DNA of 64,000 nucleotides, from positions 124,001 through 188,000 of the forward strand of contig JANHCV010000012.1 in assembly GCA_025594325.1 (NCBI GenBank). Direction: 5' to 3'. The translations under genes and the position numbers were made by a program. This document shows, in pieces, positions 50,801 to 53,497 of this stretch. The DNA is from Blastocladiella emersonii ATCC 22665 (taxonomy: Eukaryota; Fungi; Blastocladiomycota). How positions within the stretch are numbered: the first letter of the stretch is position 1; each line of letters opens with the position of its first letter. The notes beneath the pieces were generated by a model. It was given only the letters and a program-made list of their open reading frames with translations. It had not been told where the DNA came from and did not search any database.

Positions 50801-53497
50801 ATGGAACCTCCTACTACGGCCGTCGTCGGCCTCAACGACATTGGCGACCAGATCGACCAGCTGGCGCACTTCGTCAAGTTGGCGAAGAAGCCTATGCACC
50901 TGTTCGCGGTGCTGCTTGAGCGCTGCTCGGCCATCTACGCCGCGCTCCTCGCCGCCCGTGGCGCGAGTGGGAAGCTACCTGCTTCGCTCATCGGCCCTGT
51001 CACGACCCTGCACGGCGTCCTGCGCGAGGCCAACAAGGCCGCGGCCAAGGTCACCGAGTCCACGCTCCTCAAGCGCACGCTCGCTGGCACCGACTACAAG
51101 GAGTCGCTCGAGCGCGCGGGCGCCACGCTCGTCACGGTTCTCGGCGAGCTGGGCACCGCCTTCAAGCTCGACTTGACCTCGGCCAATCTGGCCGCCGAGT
51201 TCAAAGCCGCGGCCGAGCGCGATCGCATCAACCTCCTCGTCTCGTTCAAGGACATGCTCGCCGCCCATCACTCGGATCTGTACCGCGACCTGGCGCTCGG
51301 CAACCAGGATGCGCGCGAGGCCCTTGCCGCGCTGCATCAGCGCATCGACGCGTCCAAGGCGCAGATCGACGAGGTGCTCGACCTCCTGCAGCAGCTGTAC
51401 AAGCACATGCACTCGGCCATCTCGCGCAACTCGGGCTTCTCGGACGAGCGTTCGGACGCCGAGACGGCGCTCAAGCCGCTCGCCGTCACCTCGTTCGACT
51501 TTGACGAGGACAAGGGCCAGCCGCTCGGCCGCGGCGGGTTCGGTCTCGTCGTCCGCGCCACGTGGATCGCGTCCAAGACGCCCGTCGCCATCAAGCGCCT
51601 GATCCCGCTGCTCGGCCACACGACCGCCGACCAGAAGGGTATCGACCTCTTCGCCAAGGAGGCCCTCGTGTGGAGCCAGATGCGCCACCCGCACGTGCTG
51701 CCGCTGCTCGGAGTCTCGCTGGCGTCCGACACGCCGTTCCTCGTCATGCCGCTCATGGAGCACGGCGACCTGTCCAAGTACGCGGCGGACCGCCCCGCCG
51801 AGCACGTTCGCCTGCTGACCGAGACAGCCATGGGCATGGCGTACCTCCACTCGAAGGACATGCTGCACGGCGACCTCAAGGCCAACAACGTGCTCGTCGA
51901 CATTTACGGCCGCGCGCAGGTCGCCGATTTCGGCATGGCGCGCGTCATTTCGGCCGCCAGCCGCTCGTCTGTTTCGGTTGCCACTTCTCTCGGGAACGTG
52001 CGCTGGATTGCGCCGGAGCGGTACACTTACGGCGTCAAGCTCGACCTCAAGTCCGACGTGTTTTCGTTCGCCATGCTCGCCTTCGAGGTGGTCGCGGGCA
52101 AGCTGCCGTTCTACGAGGAGCACGACGACGGGATCGTCAAGGACTGGATCAAGGAGGGCGTCCGTCCCGCTGCGCCGACCGGTTCTTCCAGCTACTCGAG
52201 TCAGCTGTGGGCGCTTGTCGAGGAGTGCTGGGCCGGGGACAGCAACGCGAGGCCTTCTTTTTCGGCCATCGTGGCGCAGCTCTCTTTGATGTTCCGCGTT
52301 GAGCTTGCTGATGTGCAACCAGTTGTTGGCAAACCGCAGACCGCTTCTCCCGACAAACTTACGCCAACCTCGCAGGTCGCGTGCGTGATCCCTCCGTCCA
52401 ACCCTGTCGCTGAGTCAAAGGTATGCGACTGGTCATCTCGGCGCGACGTGATTGTTTTTCTCACTGCCTCGTCTTTCGCTTGATCCAAACAGAATGTTGA
52501 TACGATCGGCAACCAGGACTTCGTTCGTGTTGGCGGCAAGATCTTCTACCTCCGCTGTGGTCGTCAAAATCAAGCTGCCATGAGTGCACTCAACAAGGCC
52601 TGTAAAGCATCTGGTGTGAAAGGTGTTAAGCTTGTGTTTCGCAATTCGTGGTGGTGGTCCACTGACAACGCCACAGCACTTGAAAACATTGCGGGTCCGC
52701 TTGAGCTTAACAAGATCCAAGAGTCGCTCGGAATTGAAATCCTTGTCCAGTCGCTTTGTCCTTGTGCAGATACGGCAGCAACGGTGCTTGGATCATTGCA
52801 TCTCGACGCCGACTTTTCACTGATGGTTTCAATCTTGTGTCCGCTTTCGACCGACTTGGCAAATGTTCTTCGCAATCACATCCCGAGTCCCATGCGGCGT
52901 TTTTGCCTTGACAACAGGTCCGACGCTTGCCTTGAACTGAATACGAAACCCATCATCTCTGCGCTTCCACTGAATTTGCAGGAGATGCGCCTCCACGGGT
53001 TCAACCTCGATGTTGCTGACGTCACCGTGCTCGTCGCTCATATTCCATCACTTCTCAAGGATCTCTCCCTCACAAGCGGCAAGCTCACTGACGAATGCGT
53101 TTCTATCCTTGCACCGGGTTTGCCGTACACATTGGAGGTGCTGTTCCTTGATGAAAACAAAATTGGCCCCGCGGGCGTAGCTTCTCTCACGGCGAATCTT
53201 CCCCGATCGCTCAAAACCTTGAGCTTGGACAAGAACTTCATTGGTAACGAAGGAGCGTCTCTCATTGCACGGAGCCTTCCGCCCTACCTCGCCAGCTTGT
53301 GGCTGCAAGACAACGGGATTGGCGACCAGGGAGCAATCGCCCTGGCATCATCGGCCGCTCAACACATTAACACCCTGAGCTTCCGTGCCCTTTCAACGAA
53401 TTTTCTTCTCAATCTGATGAGAAATTGCCTTACTCGGGAGGGAGAACAAGTTGTAAAAAAGGTGAAACCGTCCCTCTTGTTGGTTTGGATCAATTAA
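50801..53497 (+). CDS. MLKL-like N-terminal helical domain + coiled linker + TKL protein kinase + C-terminal LRRs (two exons, about 874 aa)
   Basis: Kinase motifs LGRGGFGLV, VAIK, HGDLKANNVL, DFG, WIAPE, KSDVFSF. Phase-0 intron 52421-52492 (GTATGC...AAACAG) places NVDTIG...QAA exactly in frame with ORF 52580-53497, which has about six 26-aa LRRs. The N-terminal ~125 aa have an amphipathic four-helix pattern. Confidence 0.85.

Follow-up and report, generated by a model that had tools for sequence, protein, structure and literature searches.

A predicted helical bundle, kinase and leucine-rich repeat protein of Blastocladiella emersonii, and the uncharacterised fungal gene family to which it is assigned

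Does a single gene of the zoosporic fungus Blastocladiella emersonii encode, on one polypeptide, a helical bundle resembling that of MLKL, a catalytically intact protein kinase and a domain of leucine-rich repeats (LRRs)? The question arose from a first-pass annotation of 64,000 nucleotides of strain ATCC 22665 (assembly GCA_025594325.1, contig JANHCV010000012.1, positions 124,001 to 188,000; this whole stretch is termed the window, and its numbering is used throughout), in which a kinase open reading frame (ORF) and a downstream LRR ORF, together spanning 50801-53497, were read as one gene for an all-in-one candidate immune receptor. The gene model, the three domains of the predicted product, the related genes in B. 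emersonii and other fungi, and the likelihood of a function in cell death are considered here in turn.

The ORF starts on the plus strand at ATG 50801, in the context ACCATGG, and extends for 540 codons to 52420. This segment, defined by ORF reading and by identity to a public protein, forms exon 1 and encodes the bundle, brace-like helices, kinase and a linker. It is followed by a 72-nt intron on the same strand (52421-52492), read directly from the window as GTATGC...AAACAG, with GT..AG borders and phase 0, and the frame of exon 1 picks up again at 52493. Exon 2 (52493-53497, plus strand) comprises 334 codons and the stop TAA 53495-53497, and encodes a pre-LRR region, the LRR domain and a short tail. 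Retention of the intron would introduce a single in-frame stop, TGA 52481-52483; splicing would yield a product of 874 aa, which is predicted to be cytosolic. At the composition of exon 2, an open frame of 334 codons is expected by chance with P ~7e-7 (0 of 20,000 shuffled sequences were open), and the other five frames over exon 2 contain 6-18 stops each.

The same arrangement was found in two paralogs from the B. emersonii genome. In P0005 (locus L001) a 68-nt phase-0 intron (L001 4651-4718) lies after codon 530, between the kinase linker and the LRRs, and in P0003 (locus L004) a 541-codon exon 1 is followed by a 61-nt GT..AG phase-0 intron (L004 6624-6684) and then by an LRR exon extending to 7719. 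Neither 68 nor 61 is a multiple of three, therefore the downstream LRR frame in these paralogs requires splicing. The window intron also carries a branch-point-like motif, CTCAC (52460-52464, plus strand), which is shared with other introns of the genome; its A precedes the 3' splice site by 29 nt. The A of this motif is located 22-29 nt before the AG in the introns of the window, L001 and L004, and in a homology-verified intron within RanBD-coding sequence at a further locus, L002, the distance being 22-24 nt in the three introns other than that of the window; the background frequency of CTCAC is 0.001 per nt in the window. Four sequencing runs covering the locus appear to be genomic, and no splice joint was seen in them. 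The coordinates and frame of the 72-bp intron given in the first-pass annotation were confirmed, the paralog introns agree with them, and the kinase and LRR ORFs are very probably one two-exon gene, as judged from comparison of the sequences.

The public annotation differs from this model. The exon-1 product is 100% identical to NCBI protein H9P43_008564 (P0001, 468 aa) over the first 466 residues, after which the public model joins 50801-52199 to 52493-52500 through an odd GTCAGC donor and the same acceptor (52492|52493) as that described here. It consequently drops the conserved kinase C-lobe and ends two codons past the acceptor, with no LRRs. We take this model to be an artefact, because the paralogs retain the sequence that it deletes. 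The only gene predictors listed in the paper describing the B. emersonii genome are ab initio ones, and RNA-seq goes unmentioned there (PMC9730499).

The N-terminal region was modelled with AlphaFold2 (AF2) over aa 1-235, using a 13-sequence family alignment, and was entirely helical, with a predicted local distance difference test score (pLDDT) of 82 and a predicted template modelling score of 0.75. The first-pass annotation had described some 125 helical residues followed by a brace-like linker, and the model agrees, with four bundle helices (11-27, 33-53, 61-85 and 98-121) succeeded by four more (127-154, 157-164, 168-184 and 191-211). The bundle is assigned to aa 1-125 (50801-51175, plus strand) from Pfam, AF2 and VIA-align, a structure comparison independent of Foldseek. 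The brace-like helical linker, assigned from the AF2 helices to aa 126-235 (51176-51505, plus strand), is the best conserved part of the N-terminal region. Of 48,161 PDB chains compared by VIA-align, mouse MLKL was ranked first (4btf_A, Z 12.7, root mean square deviation 2.5 Å over 121 residues) and the human MLKL N-domain second (6ux8_A, Z 11.7, 138 of 152 residues), a ranking that bears out the likeness to MLKL that had been proposed. These two alignments covered 121-138 residues at 17-19% identity. Plant AtMLKL3 was ranked seventh (Z 9.9) and plant CC and CC-R domains lower. The alignment to MLKL reaches only about aa 148-156, short of the end of the brace-like helices at 211.

Sequence searches gave a compatible picture. 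Pfam MLKL_N was matched over aa 16-132 (E=5e-4), and by six of 13 N-termini from the family, with a best value of 4e-8 and with relatives that exceed the Pfam cut-off; the Pfam scan detected neither HeLo nor Helo_like_N in the N-terminus. A profile of the N-domain retrieved only 20 matches from 1.84 billion proteins. Eight of the nine matches scanned from beyond the Blastocladiomycota carried MLKL_N and six of the nine also a kinase, the sources of these remote matches including Steccherinum, Panus, Rhizophlyctis and Zopfochytrium. Against the sequences of the PDB a profile search with the N-domain found MLKL chains only at E 0.18-1.4, which is suggestive and not significant, and Foldseek with the whole 235-aa model against the PDB returned only meaningless global matches to G protein-coupled receptors and designed bundles (E >0.1, template modelling score ~0.2). 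As modelled, the N-terminus folds as an MLKL-type four-helix bundle.

The kinase domain occupies aa 239-494 (51515-52282, plus strand) and was identified with Pfam PK_Tyr_Ser-Thr (E=9e-50). The motifs GRGGFG, VAIK (K265), E287, HGDLKANN (356-363), DFG (376-378) and APE (404-406) are all present, and the catalytic loop reads HGD and not HRD, making this a non-RD kinase. Among 14 family members no variation was seen at K265, E287, H356, G357, DFG and PE, and next to none at D358 and N363; the intact VAIK, HGDLKxxN, DFG and APE motifs recognised earlier are thereby corroborated across the family. The best-scoring solved sequence was an EGFR tandem-kinase construct, matched in two stretches, and the next nearest solved kinases are headed by Roco4 (E ~3e-31) and include RIPK4, TNNI3K and receptor tyrosine kinases. 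Every element of the catalytic core is in place (Gly loop, beta3 Lys, alphaC Glu, catalytic Asp and Asn, DFG and APE); the domain is classed as an active kinase of the TKL group, and from these residues it is apparently catalytically competent.

Between the kinase and the intron lies a fast-evolving linker (52283-52420, plus strand), with 20% identity to the corresponding part of L004, and past the intron the first 122 residues of exon 2 (52493-52858, plus strand) form a pre-LRR region of low-to-moderate model confidence, in which the motifs ..FYL..G..NQAA..AL.. and LENIA.P are common to the unannotated exon of L004. The LRR domain follows (52859-53392, plus strand), assigned by Pfam, AF2 and Foldseek to the type found in ribonuclease inhibitor (RI) and NLRs, with approximately 7-8 repeats of 26-28 aa. 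An LRR C-terminus had been expected from the first reading and was recovered: exon 2 matched Pfam LRR_6 (E=1.8e-11), BLASTP aligned it to the LRRs of P0005 (E=2e-23), and AF2 modelled exon-2 residues 130-280 as approximately 7-8 strand-helix repeats with a pLDDT of 83-97 over most of their length. The top Foldseek matches to this fold were ribonuclease inhibitor (RNH1), NLRP1/2/3, NOD2 and NLRX1 (E 2e-9 to 1e-6), and the sequence matches were likewise of NLR/RI type. No segment resembling a transmembrane helix was found outside the bundle, the highest 19-aa Kyte-Doolittle window (1.77) being located in bundle helix 2. Pfam scans of both exons returned kinase, MLKL_N and LRR families only, with no NACHT, NB-ARC, Roc or COR domain.

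The gene is not singular: at least five paralogs are present in the B. emersonii genome. The order of the three domains was found in B. emersonii (P0005, 903 aa, and P0004), in B. britannica (P0125, 1076 aa, P0011 and P0013) and in Allomyces javanicus (P0006 and P0007), so that the search among zoosporic fungi suggested earlier was productive in both Blastocladiella and Allomyces. P0005, P0006, P0011 and P0125 are full-length single proteins with all three domains, and exon 1 is 52-53% identical to P0005 and P0006. With the Blastocladiomycota members the window gene has colinear homology from the bundle through the brace and kinase to the RI-type LRRs, and its phase-0 intron in the linker is conserved in the paralogs at L001 and L004. 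More distant relatives vary at the C-terminus: the chytrid Polyrhizophydium stewartii has a weak MLKL_N match, a kinase and LRRs of typical type, Rhizophlyctis rosea has MLKL_N, a kinase and ankyrin repeats, and Basidiomycota have MLKL_N plus a kinase, some being labelled TKL-ccin. Across this wider family the C-terminal module is therefore an RI-type LRR, a typical LRR, ankyrin or absent. The bundle, kinase and LRR assignments and the gene model of the original proposal stand; the protein they describe is related to others from Allomyces, B. britannica, chytrids and Basidiomycota. All members of the family already have public records, entered as 'hypothetical protein' or as generic kinases, and literature searches under MLKL with Blastocladiomycota or chytrid, and under MLKL-like with LRR and fungal, gave no description of the three-domain family. 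This agrees with the first-pass annotation, which was aware of no characterised case of the architecture in fungi, and on sequence comparison the gene belongs to an uncharacterised family of zoosporic fungi. Two further arrangements were observed. P0018 of P. stewartii (848 aa) has a COQ9 domain ahead of kinase and LRRs and most likely represents two neighbouring genes merged by the gene model, and two annotated LRR-only genes (546 aa each, LRR_6/LRR_4) lie directly downstream of P0004 (L005 5782-8299, minus strand), where they may form a local LRR gene cluster.

The paralogs of B. emersonii differ in ways that suggest rapid turnover. By domain, identity between the window gene and L004 is 53% in the bundle, 72% in the brace, 65% in the kinase, 20% in the linker, 30% in the pre-LRR region and 27% in the LRR. 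The copy at L002 (P0002, L002 4001-6276, contig JANHCV010000008.1) is 96-100% identical to the window from about coding nt 300 to 52473, with a synonymous divergence (dS) of ~0.04 in this near-identical part, whereas the first 300 nt, which encode the bundle, are 63-82% identical with a dS of 0.40. Homology ends at 52473, 53 nt into the intron, and RanBD-coding sequence then follows in L002. To be read in frame this sequence would need a weak GAG acceptor; in the public model it is the kinase C-lobe that is removed by splicing instead. The mosaic structure of L002 suggests recent gene conversion.

The copy at L004 (P0003, 5001-7719) carries an in-frame TAG (6408-6410) in place of a conserved Trp, which ends the annotated protein at 469 aa, and its catalytic loop reads HGG instead of HGD. 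Past its 61-nt intron the LRR exon, low in GC and unannotated, is open for ~340 codons. This copy is likely a young pseudogene or pseudokinase copy, or reflects a sequence error. A possible lesion was also noticed in P0005, in which the annotated 60-nt 'intron 1' (L001 3253-3312) is a multiple of three with TAG as its second codon, and the remainder translates to sequence homologous to a bundle helix (..LLKR..); a nonsense codon has probably been masked here by the ab initio model. Judged from these comparisons, the family is shaped by duplication, gene conversion, pseudogenisation and the swapping of C-terminal repeat modules, and the fast LRR, gene conversion, lesions in L004 and module swaps together give a pattern that appears receptor-like.

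How the predicted protein relates to known systems was considered next to the evidence on function. Animal MLKL (4btf, 6ux8) resembles it in the fold of the N-terminal bundle, the Pfam MLKL_N signal and a predicted helical connector leading straight into a kinase-fold domain; MLKL is a pseudokinase, however, whereas the B. emersonii kinase has every catalytic residue, and the B. emersonii protein has an additional C-terminal LRR domain. To our knowledge RIPK3, which activates MLKL in trans, has not been described in fungi. The plant MLKLs (AtMLKL1-3, 6ka4; wheat Pm13) have the same order of bundle, brace and kinase fold and a role in innate immunity. They are said, in work of Mahdi et al. from 2020, to be pseudokinases with a serine-rich C-terminal region rather than LRRs; the LRR C-terminus and the intact kinase set the B. 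emersonii protein apart. Fungal HeLo/HELL proteins share a membrane-targeting helical bundle related to that of MLKL, but the N-terminus here is assigned to MLKL_N by Pfam and neither an amyloid motif nor a partner NLR is evident. Some HELL domains occur in proteins with kinase or pseudokinase domains (PMC12881547); no description of an LRR tail on HELL-kinase proteins was found in the literature. The first-pass annotation had stated that the fungal NLR-type receptors described so far use WD40, ANK or TPR sensors rather than LRRs, and a 2025 review concurs, no LRRs having been identified in the fungal NLR-like proteins analysed (PMC12881547).

The LRRs themselves are of the RI-like class with 26-28-aa repeats seen in ribonuclease inhibitor and in animal NLRs (NLRP1/2/3, NOD2, NLRX1), and the layout of an N-terminal effector, a central switch and C-terminal repeats is also that of animal NLRs, with the difference that a kinase takes the place of the NOD switch and NACHT/NB-ARC is lacking. 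ROCO/LRRK proteins (Dictyostelium Roco4, human LRRK2) similarly combine a TKL kinase and LRRs on one cytosolic chain, but the B. emersonii protein has no Roc GTPase/COR, its LRRs are C-terminal and not N-terminal to the kinase, and an MLKL-type bundle stands in front. Assignment to four established classes was rejected: MLKL proper by the intact kinase residues; NLR/STAND receptors by the missing NACHT/NB-ARC in Pfam scans, although C-terminal LRRs of RI type are present; plant-type LRR receptor-like kinases by the C-terminal position of the LRRs and the lack of a transmembrane helix before the kinase; and ROCO/LRRK kinases by the absence of Roc or COR in Pfam.

A reading in which the protein is a sensor, switch and executioner is plausible by analogy. 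At rest the bundle would be kept inactive by the LRR and the kinase. A ligand, or a modified self protein, bound by the fast-evolving LRR would lift this inhibition, and the kinase would autophosphorylate or oligomerise, standing in for RIPK3, which acts on animal MLKL in trans. The brace would then shift and the freed bundle would oligomerise and attack membranes, leading to regulated cell death or ion flux. We infer sensing, switching and killing from the likeness to MLKL and NLRs. Taken together, gene, architecture and mechanism, the proposal that this is a one-chain ligand-sensing cell-death or immune receptor has about an even chance of being correct.

Several points weigh against it. Toxicity, membrane action and ligand binding are proposed by analogy, the splice by comparison between paralogs, and expression of the gene is presumed. 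VIA-align itself carries the caveat that unrelated helical bundles can score Z ~13, so that the fold match alone is no proof; the MLKL_N score of this protein (20 bits) lies under the curated Pfam cut-off of 27; and the MLKL_N fold is shared with proteins not known to kill cells, with plant U-box proteins, MCA1/2 and CNR13 placed ahead of mouse MLKL in the AlphaFold DB. The first 120 residues of exon 2 model poorly (pLDDT mostly 31-71), as do the last 23. The G+C content at third codon positions (GC3) is 0.57 in the linker and exon 2, much lower than in exon 1 (0.90) and lower also than in the P0005 LRR exon (0.93), which could reflect relaxed constraint. Ordinary signalling, finally, would account just as well for an active kinase joined to LRRs.

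This last point is the strongest competitor, to which we give a lower though substantial probability. The protein would be an ordinary signalling kinase in which the LRRs recruit partners or substrates and the bundle only regulates, oligomerises or tethers the protein to a membrane, with no role in death or immunity. The conservation of catalytic residues throughout the family, unlike in the MLKL pseudokinases, is consistent with such a function, as is the presence among the nearest solved kinases of Roco4, an LRRK-type LRR kinase of Dictyostelium. The bundle and the repeats are also compatible with it: the N-terminal domains of plant U-box proteins, MCA1/2 and CNR13 match the fold at least as well as mouse MLKL in the AlphaFold DB, and Foldseek also finds RI-type LRRs in axonemal and RanGAP-type proteins. 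However, the top match among solved chains is MLKL and not a U-box, MCA or CNR13 protein, and the sequence profile matched is MLKL_N. Birth-and-death evolution with pseudogenes, module swaps and a much faster LRR is, moreover, more typical of conflict receptors than of housekeeping signalling.

A second alternative, which is distinctly unlikely, concerns what is expressed. Only the bundle and kinase would be produced, either as a 561-aa protein if the intron is retained or as the 468 aa of the public model, and the LRR ORF would be a decaying pseudo-exon of an ancestral kinase-LRR gene. The composition of the locus lends it some weight, because GC3 is 0.90 through the kinase, falls to 0.575 from about 52301, within the linker and thus inside exon 1 near the end of the kinase, and stays at 0.57 in exon 2. 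The public annotation has no LRR, the length of the intron is a multiple of three with one in-frame stop, and pLDDT is low both before the LRRs and in the C-terminal tail. Opposed to this are the improbability of a 334-codon frame arising by chance while the other frames are rich in stops, the pLDDT of 83-97 in the LRR core, and L004, which has kept the intron and an open 340-codon LRR exon at 27-30% identity, indicating long divergence without loss of the frame. The public annotation, for its part, is ab initio and its model deletes the conserved kinase C-lobe. A recent graft of the LRR at the intron was also considered as the source of the drop in GC3 and was rejected, since the break at ~52300 lies off the intron and inside exon 1, a low linker GC3 is common to the three paralogs examined, and the old paralog L004 has a low-GC LRR exon behind the same intron (GC3 0.67, compared with 0.57 in the window and 0.93 in P0005). 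Mutation resembling repeat-induced point mutation was unsupported, with a TpA/ApT index of 0.33. Our guess is that the low GC3 reflects fast evolution without codon or gene-conversion bias.

That the LRR ORF is a gene of its own, lying next to the kinase gene and in frame with it by chance, is highly improbable: the LRR frame does have an internal ATG (52580) and a composition unlike that of exon 1, but the order of kinase, intron and LRR recurs with the same intron phase in L004 and L001, single full-length proteins of the same order exist in Allomyces and B. britannica, and homology with the L004 exon starts at exon-2 residue 11, upstream of this ATG, which argues against a separate LRR gene.

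The reading of the protein as a one-chain receptor would have wider consequences. Regulated cell death is carried out by MLKL-type bundles in animals and by related HeLo/HELL bundles in filamentous fungi; in plants, MLKL homologues and related coiled-coil domains have roles in immunity. In all characterised cases known to us, the bundle is triggered in trans, or else by a NOD domain or an amyloid template, and any kinase fold beside it is dead. A live kinase and NLR-type LRRs on one chain in early-diverging fungi would provide a testable model for the first coupling of sensor, switch and executioner. More speculatively, zoosporic fungi might hold a self-contained necroptosis-like module, in which LRRs sense, the protein's own kinase acts as the switch and the MLKL-type bundle kills or depolarises the cell. 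The active kinase would then be ancestral, the trans-activated MLKL pseudokinases of animals and plants having degenerated from it, and kinase-switched LRR receptors would constitute a third kind of intracellular immune receptor beside the NOD-switched NLRs; we regard this extension as doubtful. The view now current, that LRRs are missing from the immune-like receptors of fungi, has to be qualified in the light of this family. Public models truncate or miss these genes (P0001 lacks the C-lobe and LRR, and the LRR exon of P0003 is unannotated), therefore surveys based on proteomes undercount the architecture.

Two minor observations were made around the locus. Genomic contigs from three runs had loose ends at 52473 and 52556. 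The continuation at 52473 is the RanBD junction of L002. At 52556 a different upstream flank of 25-27 nt adjoins the LRR exon; this flank (24 nt used) was not found in the window or in the five fetched loci, and a further copy or allele of the LRR exon may lie behind it. A gene of 160 aa with no Pfam match is also annotated publicly, just ahead of the kinase gene (window 49201-50139).

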